Source: Pelomyxa schiedti
Taxonomy: Eukaryota > Protista > Evosea
Reading direction: 5' to 3'
Length of the DNA stretch: 37,300 nt
NCBI GenBank assembly: GCA_020536535.1
Contig: JAHLWZ010000763.1
Coordinates: forward strand, 1-37,300
The notes under the pieces are model-generated. The model saw only the letters and a program-made list of their open reading frames with translations, did no database searches and was not told the origin of the DNA. How positions within the stretch are numbered: position 1 is the first letter of the stretch; each line of letters opens with the position of its first letter. Shown piece by piece: positions 6,347 to 14,836 of this stretch. The position numbers were made by a program, and so were the translations under genes.

Positions 6347-8719
6347 ATGAGCAACAAACTAGTGGAGTGTGTTCCCAATTTCTCGGAGGGACGTGACCAT
6401 ACCGTTATTGATGCCATAGTCCAAGCGTATGTGCCATAACTTACCCGTTTTTTACTTGTTCGAAATGACAGTTATAATAACATTTTTATGGTGTCTCTTC
6501 GCTGTTGCATTTTGGTCAACCTGTTGTCGGAGTGTGCGTAATTATTCTTGATAGTAAGTAACATTTTGGTGTTGAATAGGGTGAAGAACACAGCTGGATG
6601 CACTGTGTTGGATTGTGACCCTGGTGCTTCTACTAACAGGACCGTCCTGACTTTCGTTGGTTCACCAGAGGCTGTGGTGGAAGGTGCTTTCAATTGCGCT
6701 GCAAAGTGCAAGGTATCACGTGCACTTGTGCGTTGACGCATTAATTAACGGGCACCTTGTAGGAGCTTATTGACATGACAAAGCACACTGGTGCCCATCC
6801 AAGGATGGGTGCTATGGATGTGTGCCCGTTTGTTCCTGTAAGCAACGTCACTATGGAAGAGTGTGTGCAGTGTGCCCACGCATTCGCGAAGAAAGCTGCA
6901 ACTCAGCTTCGTATTCCCCTCTTTCTCTACGAGGTTATACCTACTTTGCCTATATTATACTTACATGCGATGCAGGAAGCGGCAACCAAGTCATATAGGA
7001 AGGCACTCAAGGATATCAGGGCTGGTGAATATGAGGGACTTCGCGAAAAGATAATGCACCCCGACTGGGTTCCTGATTATGGACCCCAAGAGTTCCTTCC
7101 CAAGTATGGAGCCACAGTCACCGGAGCAAGATTCTTCCTTATAGCTTATAATATCAATGTACTGGGTACCAAAGAGCAGGTTGGTTGTTTCTGCAAGCCT
7201 TCACTGTCTGACTTGTTCTTTCTCCAGGCACACAGAATTGCTCTTAACCTCAGGGAAACAGGACGCGGAGCTGGCAAGCCAGGACGGCTCCCCAAAACCA
7301 AGGTAGATCCAAGTTCTGTCAGCAAACTAATTCCAAGGTTCATTTCAAAAAAGGCAATTGGGTGGTGGGTTGCAGAATACAATATGGCACAGATCTCCAT
7401 GAATTTAGATGATTACCGCATCACTCCTCCACATATCGCCTATGAAGAGAGTAAGAAGGATGCAGCTGAGGTTGGAGTAGCAATTGTTGGGAGTGAAATT
7501 GTTGGGTGCGCCCGCTTCAACCATATTTGAGGAAAAATTGTAACTCTACAATTAGACTTGTTCCTCTCGATTGTCTCTTGGCAGCAGCGAACTATTACGC
7601 GAACCGCGAAGGTTTACTCCTTCTTGAGGAGGACCAAAAAGTGAGACTTGCCGTTGAACGCCTTGGTATAAATGTTCCGCTGTTGTGTCTTTTAACTTCA
7701 TTCAGGACTTGGAGCATGCAAGCCATTTGAGGCCAATAAGAGAATCATCGAATACATTGTCAGTGGTGATTCTGCCACTACTGCCCCTTTGGCATCTCTT
7801 ACAGTGAAGAACTTTGTTAAAGAAGTTGCAGCCAGAAGTGTTGCACCCGGTGGCGGGTCAGTCTCCGCCCTTATAGGTACTATGCTATAGCACTGGTTTT
7901 CCAATTCACGGCATTAAGGGTCTCTTGGCGCCGCTTTGGGTGCGATGGTCGGTCTACTTTCCTACGGGAAAATTAAATTCCTGGACAAGGATAAAATTAT
8001 GCGCGAAAACATTCCCCCTCTCTACGAGTAAGCCTTTCCATCCTATTCCGCAATTTAACTCATTACCACCAGTGCAATGGCAAAACTCATACCCCTCATC
8101 GATGCCGACACAGCGGCATATAATGCAGTAGTTGCCGCACACCAGCTTCCTAAGGTTCTAATTTTTTTTTCCTTTCCACACACTGTCTGACCGATTTTTT
8201 CAGGATGACCCAAACAAGGCTGCGGCCATAACCAAAGCCAACCAGCAAGCAACGGAAGGTAAGAAATCCAACCAATACCAAATCAACTACCAATAACACA
8301 CAAATAGTTCCCCTTACAACAATGCGTGTTGCCTCTACCTGCTGGCCAGCCATGCTTCAAATGGCCCTTCACGGCAACATTGGCTCCAAGTCTGACCTTG
8401 AAGTCGGTGCCAGGGTACATATCTACTTGCTCACTTAAACAAACACATAAAACGGCACTACCTGTCTAAATCCCAACTACTATATCAAGCCAAAACAAAT
8501 TCAACCCTAACCCACAATTGACAGGCACTTGAGCTTGGCGTTTGGGGAGCACACCGCAATGTGCTCATCAACACAGAACCCATGCCCAAGTCCGAATGGA
8601 AAACCGCAGTAACGGCAGAAGCAGAGGGCCTCATGAACCTCGCTGTGGCTCAGTCCAAGGCAGTAGTTGATGCCATAAACGCAAGGCCAATGCCCCCTCC
8701 AACACCTGAGGACTCATAG
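6347..8719 (+). CDS. FTCD: Bifunctional formimidoyltransferase-cyclodeaminase (His catabolism/folate one-carbon), multi-exon
   Basis: [62 protein letters not shown], cyclodeaminase [54 protein letters not shown]. Stop TAG 8717-8719. Confidence 0.96.
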
Positions 8720-8880
8720 GCAAAAACCCAATCATTCAAGATAGTGCCAGGTGCCACTTGTTCTTAACGAATTGTGGGGAACAACAAACAAACCTTCTTT
8801 TTCCGTCTTTTTTGTTTGTCCTTCACACCAACTTGAGCACTTTTCACACTTTTGGGTTTTCCTGGTGATTGTCCAATCAG

Positions 8881-11800
8881 ATGGCTGATTTCGAGGAAGA
8901 GTAAACCGCTGGTCCACGGCCAACCAACGAATCTTCCACAAGACGAAAAATTTGTCTGGTGACAAACTCATCATCCACTTTCCAAAGTGTTGTGAACCTA
9001 CCGCGAAAAGAATTGTTCTCTTCGATGATTTGTGAGGCACAAACAACTGAATTCTTGGCAAAGAACCAAACTGTAACTTCTGTGTATCACTATCTTTCAG
9101 AAAACCTTACCCTCAGGGAGCGTAGCAAGCACATGGACCGGACAGATTTCCAGTGTGTGCTCACCAAGCTTTTCCCCACAGGTTATTCGAATTGTCTTCC
9201 CCCCCACCTTGTTTTCCTCATGGTCACACAGAGAGCGAACGAGAAAGTGGAGGACTGTCCACTGCGAAACGAATAGAGGAGTACATCACCACCATTCGTG
9301 GAGGAAACACAGCCCTCACTGTGGAGAGATGTTGCGATACTCTGGGAGGCAAGTCATACCTGCAGATAGAGTACAACTCCACTCCTCAAGCAGGGAGCTC
9401 ATCGCCTCCTTTCTATCTGCTCCCAAGTTCCTCTTTTCTGCAGGTTGGGCTTGTTTCGTGCTCCTCCCATCATTTCCTCTTTTGACTCTACTTCACCAAA
9501 AGGCGAACGACCGTGGGTCGTCTGTGCAGGATGCCCATGACAGATACGTTGGCCAGGGCCTGTCTGTCCCACAATTGGCTCCGCCGGCCTACCGCGTCAA
9601 CGCCGGGCTAGTTTGTTACCTCTTCGATAGGCTGGCACTTGAGCGACCCACAATTCGGTGCCGAGTGGTTTGCCTCGTGCCCCTTTACGACGATGCCTCA
9701 TCTAACGCAGTTTACGTTCAACGTCAAATCCGTGGGTCTTTTTTTCCTTATGCAAAAATTCACCCAATTTTTTTTTTTACACGTACTCTATTGTTTGAAG
9801 TTAGTAACTGTACTGTTCACAATGCTGACTTTTTTCCCCTAGGCAAGTTGGAAGTGGAGGAAGGCGTGAATAAAGCAGATGCCCTGATTCTTGATACGTG
9901 GGGCAAACCAAAGCTTGGTTGGTATTGCCACTTTTTACCATTTGTCACGTGAACAAGAGGATTTTGGTCTATTACATTGGAAGATTCTTGTGAAACCTAT
10001 CAAGTACAAGGGTGTAAGTCTATCCGAAGTTGCCCAGAGCGTTTTTACAGCCCTCAAAACTTGCTTTTACTCCTGTACTATCTTTCTCCCTTATTTACAA
10101 CAACTAATAAGAACAGACATTTGTCCCTCTTATCCAGCATGCAACTCGGAGTTTGATTGTCGTCTGGACAGTTCTTTCAATGTAACTCCTCTTTACGGGG
10201 AAATACCGAATAATACTCTGGAGCCCTGTGACTATTCTCTCCAGGGAAGGATACTCATTCGCCCGAAGTATAATGTTGGTACTCACGTCCTGTTCTAGTG
10301 ACTTACTCCACAACTACAGGTAGCAACAGTGAAAACGGAATTAGAAAATTACTTTTGTGAAATCAAGAGAAATCCAGATCTCTTCCAGAGACTGTGCAAA
10401 CTTGGGGATTCTTATAGACCTAGTGTTAAACTGGATGAGGTGTGTAAATGGAACCTATAAAAAAATCCCTGATGGTTTGTCCTGTAGTACTCTCTCAATT
10501 TTGAAATTGGGGACCAGTTGTGGCATTGCATCATTTGTAAGAAGGTGCCCCCCTTTTTTTTCCCCTACTTCATACTTATATTTCCCAATCAGGATGACCA
10601 GTTCACCCCCCTGGTGACCAAGTCATTTGAGTACGCCGGGTGCCAAACAGAGCCAATATCCTGGTGCCCCACAAGCTCTGCTGTGCCAGACTTCAACATC
10701 ACACGCCACGGTAAAGTGGAGATGGTTGGATTTGCATTGCCGAGTGTGCAACAACACAGCGGCGACGATAGCGAGAACCTTTTCCTAAACTCACTGGACA
10801 AGAGTTACAGAATCCTGAGGAACATCATCCTTCTCGAATCCGAGAGATGTGGCACCGTTTCACCGTCGTCAGCATCACCGGTTCTCACGCCTGACGATAG
10901 TATACAAGAGGGAAGGATCACAACCTACCCGGATCTCATGGGCCAACCATCGTGGAAAGACTTCGTGATTCCATCAGAGGGACTTTCAGAGGAAACCAGA
11001 CTCCATAAACTCAAGGTTCAAATACCGAAATAAACAATTCCGCTTAAGAAAGAAAAGAGAAACAGAGATTTCCTGCAGCAACAGTGCCAACGACTTCTTG
11101 GATATCAAATGAATACGAATTTTGCGCCTCTCTCTGATGAAATGATAGATTGTTTCAAAGTACCGGGCAATAATGTTGGGGATCCTTTCCAGCCAGGAAA
11201 CTTAACGGTATGACCCCCTTCTTCTTGCATTGCTGGCACTGCAATTAACAACAATGTTCAGCTGAACACAAAACACTTGGAGATCAATGTTCTGAATTAC
11301 TTTGCCAAGTTGTGGGGAATTCAGCATTTCCGTGATCCAGCCAATCCACCACCTCACCCTGAGTCATATTGGGGTTACATTCTCACAATGGGGGCAACAG
11401 GTAAAAACCCCCAACCTTCGCAAGGATACTGATTCGAACACAGAGGCCAATATGTATGCGTTGTTCAATGCGCGGGACTATCTGTCTGGAGTTTCACTGA
11501 TCAATGCACAACGGGTGCCTCCAAGAAAGAGTGAAAGGCACAGAGAATTCAAAATGCCTGTTGTCAATCAGTTTAGCTTGGCACAACCAGCATTTTCAGC
11601 CCAAATGTCCATGAGACCTCGAGAACCACTCGCACCTCATGATCCCTCTTTCACTCCTGTTGCATTTTTCAGGTTTGAAAGTTTATGTCAACTTTCCTTG
11701 TGATCTCACGATTTTGGCAGCGAAGACACACATTACTCAATCATCAAAACATTGCGCTCGATGAGCATCTTCTCGTGCATGGAACTCGGGAAGATGATGC

Positions 11801-13222
11801 ACAGCAAGAAGAAGCACCGGGCTTGGTGGCGGTGCCCAATCAGTGACAACGGGGAGTGGCCCGACGTGCCCACCGTCGAAGCAACTGGAATGTCACACAC
11901 ATTCCCTTTTCACAAAATGAATAACCGTGGGAACAACAGGTGGGACAAGAGGACCAGGAACCATCAGAGAGGATCACCTTTTGGTACTGTTGAGGTTCTT
12001 CTGTGAGAAAGGGTACCCTCCTCTGATCATCTTGAACATTGGAACCACTTTCAAGTGTGGATATGACCCAGTTGATACATTATGTGTGTGCCCTTTTCAC
12101 CTGTTTCCTCAATCAAACAAACCGAAACACTTCATTCCCCCACACAGTGCCACAAATACGGCAAGTTCTCGCGGAAACGAAAATGGAGAAGCGTGTGATG
12201 TGGCCAAAAGGATCGAAAAGAGAACAAAGACACATGGAGATCAGAGACGGATATTGGATCCACGTTGATGCTGCACTTGGTGGTTCTTATGTTCCTTTTC
12301 TTCGTCAGGTTCGGGTCATCCTCCCTTCCTTTTCTTCCCCGGATTTGAACTGATTGCATTTCTCCAAAACAGCGAGGGTACCAGCTTCCACAATTCGACT
12401 TCAGTCTTCCGATGGTTCATTCCATTTCGACTTCCTCACACAAGTTCATTGGGTCGCCCTTTCCAGGTGGAATTTACATGACAAAGGTATTTCGTTTCTG
12501 TTTTCCTGAACTCTGTCTCATTACTTTCTTTCTCCTCAGGCAAAATACCAGATCATCCCTCCAAGTACATTTTCGCCCTCTCCTCCCTCCCATCTGAAGA
12601 TTCTAAACTGCCGCCAGGTGACCCACAGTACATCGGCTCTCCGGACACAACATTCGCGGGATCCCGAAGTGCCCTCACGCCACTCTTCATGTGGAACGCC
12701 CTTGCGTCAACCTCGCAGTTCGAACTGGCGAACAGAGCAGAGAGATGTGTCCAGCTCACGCATTACTTTGTCGATCAGCTCCGGCAACTCGAGAAAAAGG
12801 TCTCCCGAATTCAGTTCCCAACTCTGTCAAACACTCAACAAACAAACACACACACACAGAACGCAGGGCGGAACCCGCCACAAGCGGAGCACCCCAGTGA
12901 CCTGTGGATCATCCACCACGGTTGCTCACTTGCTGTGTGCTTCAGGGCTCCGCACCGTGACACCACGTTCAAGTACAGTCTCAGCGGTGAGACTCTGGAT
13001 GAACCTGGTGTGGATTATGATGGAACCAGGAAGATGATGTTCCGGAGGACATGGAATCACGTTTATGTGATGCCGAGTGTCACAAAGCTCATGATTGACA
13101 ACCTCCTTGCTGATTTGGATTCTCATGGTTTCGCCTTAGGTATTTCCGCACGGAAATGCTCTGGATCCCTCTAATGAAAACTTACCAACCAAATTACAGA
13201 CTCTGAAATGGCAGTCATCTAA
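8881..13222 (+). CDS. Fusion gene: degenerate ArgE/M20 acetylornithine-deacetylase-like domain (~9130-10845) plus group II PLP-dependent amino-acid decarboxylase (VlmD/histidine-/serine-decarboxylase family, ~10960-13222), multi-exon
   Basis: Decarboxylase motifs LLGYQMN, NNVGDPF, YWGYILTMGAT/EANMYALFNARDYLSG, EDTHYSIIK, NIGTTFKCGYD, WIHVDAALGGSY, STSSHKFIGSPFPGGIYMTK (PLP Lys), YIGSPDTTFAGSR, HVYVMPSV. The end of the M20-like part and the start of the decarboxylase share one open frame (ORF 10518-11033). The last intron after ...GFAL gives DSEMAVI* (TAA 13220-13222). Confidence 0.85.
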
Positions 13223-13639
13223 CTCCGGCTATCGACACCTTTTTTGCTGGTTTTGTAATCAAATTTTTTTTCCCTCTTCGACTGTCGCAAATCCGGTGCC
13301 GCCGGTTTTGAGGGCTAACGACTCTACATGTGTCTGCGGTCATAACAGGCCACGTCAGGTCGCGCAGTTCGGTGCTCAGCCCGAGCCACTCTTCAAAGAG
13401 GAAAAAAAATACCCGTGGTTCAGCTAACAGATCAGGCTCCCAACCAAGGTGAACGTTCCCGACCTACCGTCCAGAACCATAGAGGTGAGGACAACACTGC
13501 CGGTTGTTTCGGCAAGAACAAGGCGAGTCTGGGGGGTGGGCATTGCTTAGAAATCATCAGAAACAATTAGAAACCGATTAGAACGTCCATTTTGTACGCT
13601 TTTTACGGGAAACTCACTATTACTTTACCCTCCGCCTAA

Positions 13640-14836
13640 AAGGATATTGAACCTCAGGGAGTGACAAGGAGCGGTGTGACCGAACACAAAAACATTTCTT
13701 TCATCCACGTTGTGGCCACGAACCTATTCAAAGCGGAGATGTGCACCCGAAATTTCATCTGCTTCACAATCAAGGCCTACACCAAATAAATAATAAAACA
13801 AAATGTAGACAGGATATGTGGATGTGGTTAAGTGCATGTGATTTATTTACTTACCTCTTAAAAAAATTTAAGTTGTGCGGCCAGGGCACAAATACCGGGT
13901 TAAGGATTATCTATAATTCGAGTTGCTCTCCATCATCGCAATTCCGTTACTTCCATAGTTTCACTCAAAATCAAGAACAACCTGGCCTTGTCCACGTTTC
14001 CCACTTTTACAATGTTGCGCTTTTGGCCTACCTTTTCAAACGGCTGGCGACTGAGAAACCTTCCCTTAATTGCAAGATAGTGTGCAAGATAACCGGTGAG
14101 GGTGAGCTACTGGACAAATATTTGGATTGTGATCAAAGCATTCAGACAGGACTCTTTGCAGGAAACTTTGGTGGAGGATCATCTTTGGGGATACCTATGA
14201 CACAGTGTGGCTTGATTCAAGACAAGGTATGAGATGACTCACATTTCCTCCATTTAACTAAGGTTCAACAGAGGACTTAGGGTGTTTAAAGTGGGGCCTT
14301 ATCGTCAACGTTCCCAGAGATACAGGGCATACAAGTCCCCTGGAAGTTGCCAAAAGTGTTTTTACTGCTCTTCGGGGTGGATTTCTTCACTGTACTCCCA
14401 ATTTATTTATGTGCTCGAACTCAAATATTAAAATAGACATTTGTCCCACCCTATCGGCATGTTCCTATAAATTGTAGCGACCATTGCGCCTTTACTCTCC
14501 AGGGGGCGCTCATATTTCTGAAAAATATAATGTTGTCCTAGTTTCCACCAGCGCATATAATGGTGACCAAGTCACTTCACTCTATTGGGTACCAAACAGA
14601 GCCAATATCTCTGGGACAACGGGACATGGGGTGCACCGAGGTGAATATCACACGCCACGGCAAAGTGGAGATGGAGGACATGGAATCACATTTATGTGAT
14701 GCCGAGTGTCACAAAGCTCATGATTGACAACCTCCTTGCTGATTTGGATTCTCATGGTTTCGCCTTAGGTATACAATGTTTGTAATTTCATTAGTTCACT
14801 AACCAGGAAATAGATTCCGAATCCTATGCCAGCTAG
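13640..14836 (+). pseudogene. Decayed tandem paralogue of the M20-decarboxylase fusion; most of the decarboxylase is deleted (5' boundary approximate)
   Basis: LRIIYNS; NVALLAYLFKRLATEKPSLNCKIVC vs NAGLVCYLFDRLALERPTIRCRVVC; EDLGCLKW...EVAKSVFTALRGGFLH/DICP; frameshift between CAFTLQG and HISEKYNV. ...NITRHGKVEM is joined out of frame to a ~100-bp near-identical copy of 13044-13143. Same terminal intron position followed by DSESYAS*. Confidence 0.8.

Follow-up and report, generated by a model that had tools for sequence, protein, structure and literature searches.

Can a protein that joins two enzymes in one chain lose the first active site and go on working with the second, and what then becomes of the dead half? 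The question is raised by a gene of the amoeba Pelomyxa schiedti (contig JAHLWZ010000763.1, positions 1 to 37,300 of the forward strand; this whole stretch of 37,300 nucleotides is called the window). The gene was first noticed in a reading made from the letters alone (here referred to as the sequence-only reading), which took it for a catalytically dead M20 deacetylase of the ArgE type fused to a pyridoxal 5'-phosphate (PLP) decarboxylase. We found that the gene belongs to a family of three, in which this window copy has degenerated while the M20 sites of the other two copies are intact, a point that the sequence-only reading had missed. Judged from conserved residues, branch lengths and an RNA contig, the window copy is probably a decarboxylase of free amino acids that carries a dead but structurally retained M20 appendage.

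The gene model rests on splice sites and on comparison with the two paralogues, which lie on contigs C613 and C792. Its main features are as follows.

9133-13222, forward strand: whole gene, 20 exons, 1017 amino acids
10593-11015, forward strand: junction exon with the C-terminal part of the M20 domain, the linker and the start of the decarboxylase; in-frame Met at 10938
11016-11057, forward strand: 42-nt GT-AG intron holding the TAA of the raw open reading frame (ORF); position and phase identical in both paralogues, best-scoring splice
11888-11939, forward strand: putative GA-AG intron; GA donor also in C613, GT in C792
12215-13139, forward strand: part covered by an RNA contig, with no mismatch and four introns confirmed

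The reading frame is free of stops from Met 9133 to the stop codon at 13222 and is interrupted by 19 introns of 40-111 nt, 18 of them GT-AG and one GA-AG. Met 9133 coincides with the start of the paralogues and is most likely the translation start, while a gene start at 8881, as originally drawn, found no support. The two halves lie on one exon, because exon 10593-11015 encodes the final strand and helix of the M20 domain and, beyond a Ser/Pro linker, the first motif of the decarboxylase. The sequence-only reading had therefore seen the shared exon correctly, but its ORF 10518-11033 is this exon plus intron sequence at either end, and the TAA of the ORF is intronic. Of the roughly 450 amino acids that it placed ahead of the decarboxylase, about 420 belong to M20 and about 30 to a linker, and the peptides that it quoted were found at their positions. 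Moreover, the NCBI protein KAH3758482.1 (P0001; 1034 amino acids, named "histidine decarboxylase") is an independent prediction of a single protein across both halves, although its model begins at 9025 and is mis-spliced around 11890-12050. Full-length database searches used this protein, and the other searches used single exons; frame checks, alignments and trees were made on joined translations. The GA-AG intron is probable on splice scores, being top-scoring in the window copy and in C613 (L010 6149-6192), where it reaches 473 against 401 for the best GT/GC alternative; the P. schiedti genome paper lists no GA-AG introns (PMC8887013). The RNA contig shows that the window copy is transcribed in the decarboxylase region.

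The first half can be divided into the following parts.

9133-9917, forward strand: degenerate M20A catalytic domain, N-terminal part (exons 9133-9181, 9232-9443, 9503-9731 and 9843-9917), 22-28% identical to the paralogues
9429-9443, forward strand: HxD site (metal His, catalytic Asp), lost; anchored by the phase-0 intron after HMDV in both paralogues
9551-9601, forward strand: GRGTTDCLGH site (bridging Asp), lost, with a 7-residue insertion
9689-9694, forward strand: EE motif (general base, metal Glu), changed to DD
9893-9895, forward strand: WxD metal-ligand Asp, kept
9958-10544, forward strand: M20 dimerisation domain (exons 9958-10074, 10117-10274, 10320-10439 and 10488-10544), 40-42% identical to the paralogues

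The M20 half aligns colinearly with M20A proteins of the N-acetylornithine deacetylase (NAOD) type over 278 columns (HHalign E 5.6e-5, probability 66%), and it is 31-35% identical to the paralogues, whose exons exceed the PF01546 cut-off. The window domain itself gave no Pfam or NCBIfam match and stayed below PF01546/PF07687 and TIGR01910, which the paralogue exons reach; searched one by one in Pfam, the window exons gave no M20 match and one weak PF00282 match, and an ESM Atlas feature search with the N-domain returned no match. An AlphaFold model of this half built with M20 homologues (pLDDT 57, pTM 0.52; the single-sequence model, at pLDDT 35, was unusable) found only M20 structures among its top 50 Foldseek matches (best E 1.9e-7). 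VIA placed it closest to 4Q7A (Z 12.0, rmsd 9.6, 295 aligned), and its top Atlas match was a eukaryotic acetylornithine deacetylase (TM 0.45). The predicted fold is thus that of M20 with an inserted dimerisation domain. This match is partly circular because M20 homologues guided the model, and the homology to the paralogues is the stronger evidence; between them they bear out the M20/ArgE ancestry and fold proposed from the letters.

Among the metal ligands, the first His and the bridging Asp are lost, the Glu reads Asp or Ala, the Asp is kept and the last His is ambiguous (a candidate stands at 10755 in the junction exon, which also has a 3-residue insertion), while both paralogues keep all five. 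Of the catalytic residues, the general-base Glu has become Asp, the HxD Asp is lost, and the His that acts in trans is deleted or Tyr. The HSG loop is missing near 10002-10013 and the GDIR Arg is replaced by Leu; in the alignment this His and Arg correspond to a His and an Arg in the dimerisation domain of DapE, where H194 and R258 are active-site residues implicated in substrate binding (PMC4012986). These losses support the view that the M20 site of the window copy is catalytically dead, as the sequence-only reading had held. Alignment with the paralogues and the mapping of the metal ligands confirmed its separate observations, namely that HxD and GRGxxD are lost and EE reads DD, while SSHKF and HVDAA are kept in the decarboxylase. 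Its suggestions for a role of the domain fared unevenly. Substrate channelling is excluded, because the domain is dead, and a sensor of N-acyl amino acids is unlikely, since the His (HSG) and Arg (GDIR) that bind the substrate have been lost too; an oligomerisation scaffold draws some support from the slower decay of the dimerisation domain.

The paralogues were found by searching the P. schiedti genome with the junction exon. Their models are free of stops (1051 amino acids in C613 and 1048 in C792) and show the same fusion, with PF01546 matches above the cut-off upstream of the same decarboxylase, and both keep all M20 metal and catalytic residues (HMD, YGRGTTD, DEE, WxD, HSG and YH). Sixteen of the 19 introns of the window copy share alignment column and phase with C613, and the other three have the same phase with an offset of 5-10 columns within the poorly aligned N-terminus. 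In the trees (one of them built from 50 rows) the three Pelomyxa genes make up a single, fully supported clade for either half. Because the paralogues share the fusion, the introns and the intact sites, and each half is monophyletic, the fusion is older than the duplications and the dead M20 domain is derived. These comparisons indicate an ancestral fusion event in the P. schiedti lineage, with the active site lost later, in the window copy, after duplication. An ancestor of P. schiedti joined an M20A deacylase of the NAOD/ArgE type to a PLP enzyme of the methionine-decarboxylase type.

A genome search with a standalone amoebozoan NAOD returned only the C613 and C792 loci plus a distant intronless M20, and no NAOD-type deacylase was detected in the genome outside the fused copies. 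An M20 gene at G000:C800:67149-68201 (L019), with an open frame of 519 codons and no apparent introns in an intron-rich genome, is possibly a lateral transfer or a contaminant. Besides, the last 486 bp of the C613 paralogue are duplicated near the contig end at 96% identity (L018 1499-1976; C613 near 31300).

The second half of the protein is much better preserved.

10920-13222, forward strand: group II PLP decarboxylase of the L-methionine decarboxylase (MetDC) type, 68-72% identical to the paralogues
11106, forward strand: Gln equivalent to MetDC Q64
11731, forward strand: His
12261, forward strand: HVDAA
12442, forward strand: PLP Lys
12629, forward strand: acid Tyr equivalent to Y421

This half matches PF00282 with 43 bits against a cut-off of 27, and the proposed fusion to a group II PLP decarboxylase is supported. 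Among solved structures it comes closest to L-methionine decarboxylase 7CIF (E 1.4e-74), and serine and histidine decarboxylases are far weaker (1e-21 to 1e-30). All three Pelomyxa genes retain the stacking His, HVDAA and the counterparts of Q64, K394 and Y421. Q64 of MetDC is presumably tied to substrate specificity; the equivalent Gln is invariant throughout the wider decarboxylase family. Identity as histidine decarboxylase (NF002748 equivalog) was rejected, since 178-182 bits were obtained against a cut-off of 305. Thus the label of VlmD/HDC type held for the group II fold, but MetDC is the closest solved relative and the histidine decarboxylase cut-off was missed; we take a link of this half to the valine decarboxylase VlmD as an assumption. 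The roles of the PLP Lys, the stacking His, the HxD Asp and the acid Tyr are as in alanine and serine decarboxylases (10.1101/2023.09.04.556203). In the tree, the Pelomyxa decarboxylases group on a long stem with no resolved sister, and a bacterial donor is possible. Because its PLP chemistry is intact, its evolution is slow and it is transcribed, the window copy would be a working decarboxylase.

The two halves of the window copy have evolved at very different rates. Among residues that are invariant in the paralogues and in outside NAODs, 29 of 93 are kept in its M20 half, compared with 149 of 159 in the decarboxylase, and its terminal branch is 1.59 for M20 versus 0.19 for the decarboxylase (0.14/0.13 and 0.51/0.25 for the paralogues). 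One alternative is that the M20 half is purely vestigial, drifting functionless and retained only as in-frame sequence before the decarboxylase, perhaps bypassed by an internal start at Met 10938. The eightfold faster M20 branch, the lack of preferential retention of invariant residues, the standalone homologues of about 570-600 amino acids without an M20 domain and the position of this Met ahead of the first decarboxylase motif would all fit such drift. But the intact paralogues have Met 10938 as well, so that no new start has arisen there, and full length and intron phases have been kept. Moreover, three weaker signs suggest some residual constraint on the dead domain. First, its subdomains decay unevenly, the dimerisation domain being 40-42% and the catalytic N-part 22-28% identical to the paralogues (Fisher p 0.011 and 0.002), against 61 and 60% for the same two parts in the intact pair (p 0.91). 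Second, amino-acid replacements are mildly more conservative than in a neutral simulation (p 0.00-0.09 outside the C-part). Third, fewer nonsynonymous (pN) than synonymous (pS) differences separate the window copy from a decayed sister copy (pS 0.66, pN 0.36 over 106 codons). On balance, we consider a purely vestigial half unlikely and read the dead M20 as a relaxed domain that is still folded.

The sister copy lies downstream in tandem.

13640-14836, forward strand: decayed tandem sister copy, in which an internal deletion has brought M20 exons of the dead type up against a copy of 13044-13143 (99% identical); it ends in another version of the last exon (14814-14836), used by the RNA contig

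It shares the active-site lesions of the window copy, among them the seven residues inserted at the GRG site and the deletion at HSG. It also has frameshifts besides the internal deletion, and its identity to the gene is about 75% in the 5' part and 99% over the 3' 100 bp, a difference that suggests recent recombination or conversion. The RNA contig departs from the gene at 13139 and resumes in the last exon of the sister copy at 14814 (one mismatch), skipping the gene's own last exon at 13200; this jump is either a splice of 1674 nt or an allele without the intervening stretch. Between the two copies, 13264-13647 is a dispersed repeat (about 384 bp), of which several nearly complete copies occur elsewhere at 89-98% identity, and some cells and contig C3692 carry other sequence there, so that it looks like a polymorphic mobile element. 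Single-cell DNA runs differ at three positions in the M20 exons (9242, 9297 and 9577; two synonymous, one Arg to Ser) and at none in the decarboxylase exons.

A second alternative gives the dead domain a task: as a regulatory pseudoenzyme it would bind a ligand, or pair with the M20 dimerisation domain of the paralogues and tune them. An M20 active site depends on a His contributed by the other subunit, and one half of a mixed dimer would therefore be dead. The dimerisation domain, which supplies active-site H194 and R258 in DapE (PMC4012986), is the best conserved part, and both partners are encoded in the genome. However, the equivalents of these substrate-binding residues are lost and an interface identity of 40% makes specific pairing uncertain, so that we regard such a role as rather improbable. 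Highly improbable is a wrong merger of two neighbouring genes or a pseudogene throughout, which could appeal to a junction without RNA coverage, to an RNA contig beginning at 12215 with a template-switch adaptor and to the raw stop at 11031, but all three paralogues have parts of both halves on a common exon, the stop falls within a conserved intron, an RNA that began at this point, in the middle of an exon, would encode half an enzyme, and the decarboxylase is conserved and spliced.

The preferred reading, a decarboxylase with a retained dead appendage, also has several points to answer. The pS/pN blocks were chosen by protein similarity and are biased, and the retention of invariant residues (31%) does not exceed overall identity, as expected of plain decay. 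The open frame of the M20 half is uninformative on M20 function, because the downstream decarboxylase requires it. The AlphaFold model is weak and steered by M20 homologues, and no RNA contig covers the M20 half or the junction. Coupling of the two steps also lacks outside support, because bacterial MetDC-type genes have no conserved M20 neighbour (2/160; see below).

For the intact proteins, the chances are about even that deacylation is followed by decarboxylation. The M20 domain would deacetylate or deformylate an N-acyl amino acid, and the freed amino acid would be turned into a primary amine and CO2 by the PLP domain. ArgE enzymes have a broad N-acyl specificity, and a neutral amino acid (Met or branched-chain) seems a likelier substrate than ornithine or His. 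Searches of the P. schiedti genome gave no match to argB or argC (introns lower their sensitivity), which makes arginine synthesis an unlikely job. After duplication, the window copy lost the di-metal site and the substrate-binding residues, and it would now decarboxylate free amino acids. Its dead M20 would be kept as a folded N-terminal appendage, constrained mainly in the dimerisation domain, for folding or self-association. A far more elaborate scheme makes the family a single-chain deacylate-then-decarboxylate machine for N-acetyl or N-formyl amino acids from digested bacteria, and the window copy an M20 pseudoenzyme that co-assembles with the intact paralogues through the dimerisation domain and regulates them; we find it quite doubtful.

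How widespread is the fusion? Among long proteins (569-1810 amino acids) selected by decarboxylase words, no second such architecture was found in the best 120 of 330, nor was any among 8000 scored candidates selected by M20 words. A junction profile run against 1.84 billion representatives matched strongly only KAH3758482.1, and junction patterns in metagenomes gave no further fusion. None of 160 bacterial and metagenomic loci of the MetDC type was fused; an M20 gene was adjacent in two, both of the dipeptidase type, which by a rough estimate is about chance level. These searches cover protists thinly, and the proteins of C613 and C792 are absent from the searched protein database; other Archamoebae may carry the fusion. 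In the literature, we found no paper on an M20-decarboxylase fusion, and the genome paper mentions neither decarboxylase nor ornithine (PMC8887013). The architecture that the sequence-only reading could not place was thus seen in no other searched organism, and the fusion is apparently restricted to this lineage, combining two known families. Immediately upstream, 6775-8730 holds a transcribed gene for glutamate formimidoyltransferase (FTCD), an enzyme of histidine catabolism, whose adjacency is probably coincidental.

Although so far limited to one species and known from sequence, the fusion offers a natural comparison of live with dead, with two intact bifunctional proteins and one copy whose first domain is dead. 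With these three proteins one can ask directly whether the fusion links deacylation to the making of an amine, and whether an M20 domain can survive as a pseudoenzyme, a case on which we found no paper. The fusion further points to an amine-producing activity, not described before, in an amoeba that is anaerobic and bears symbionts, and it offers a way towards the substrate of a widespread family wrongly named "histidine decarboxylase".

Compared with known systems, the window M20 is colinear over the whole domain with NAOD and M20A proteins of the ArgE/DapE type (Cucumis P0142, Copromyxa P0143 and E. coli ArgE 7RSF), sharing the fold with an inserted dimerisation domain, and the Pelomyxa paralogues keep all ligands. 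However, known members are standalone proteins of about 430 amino acids, while the Pelomyxa copies are fused; the window copy lacks the first His, the bridging Asp, the HSG His and the GDIR Arg, and no acetylated ornithine pathway was detected in the host. The decarboxylase half keeps the PLP Lys, stacking His, Asp, acid Tyr and pocket Gln of the L-methionine decarboxylase of Streptomyces sp. 590 (7CIF). Homologues of the MetDC type from bacteria, bdelloid rotifers and Physarum are 33-39% identical over 91-99% of the decarboxylase domain, but those among the best 120 of 330 are all standalone (568-707 amino acids), and the proteins of the 160 loci have at most 187 extra N-terminal residues. 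PRK02769 histidine decarboxylase, plant serine decarboxylase and the valine decarboxylase VlmD share the group II fold, and a partial match of 178 bits in this group is the source of the NCBI name. The closest comparison is within the genome itself, where the C613 and C792 paralogues share fusion, introns and decarboxylase with the window copy, but the M20 site is intact only in the paralogues.

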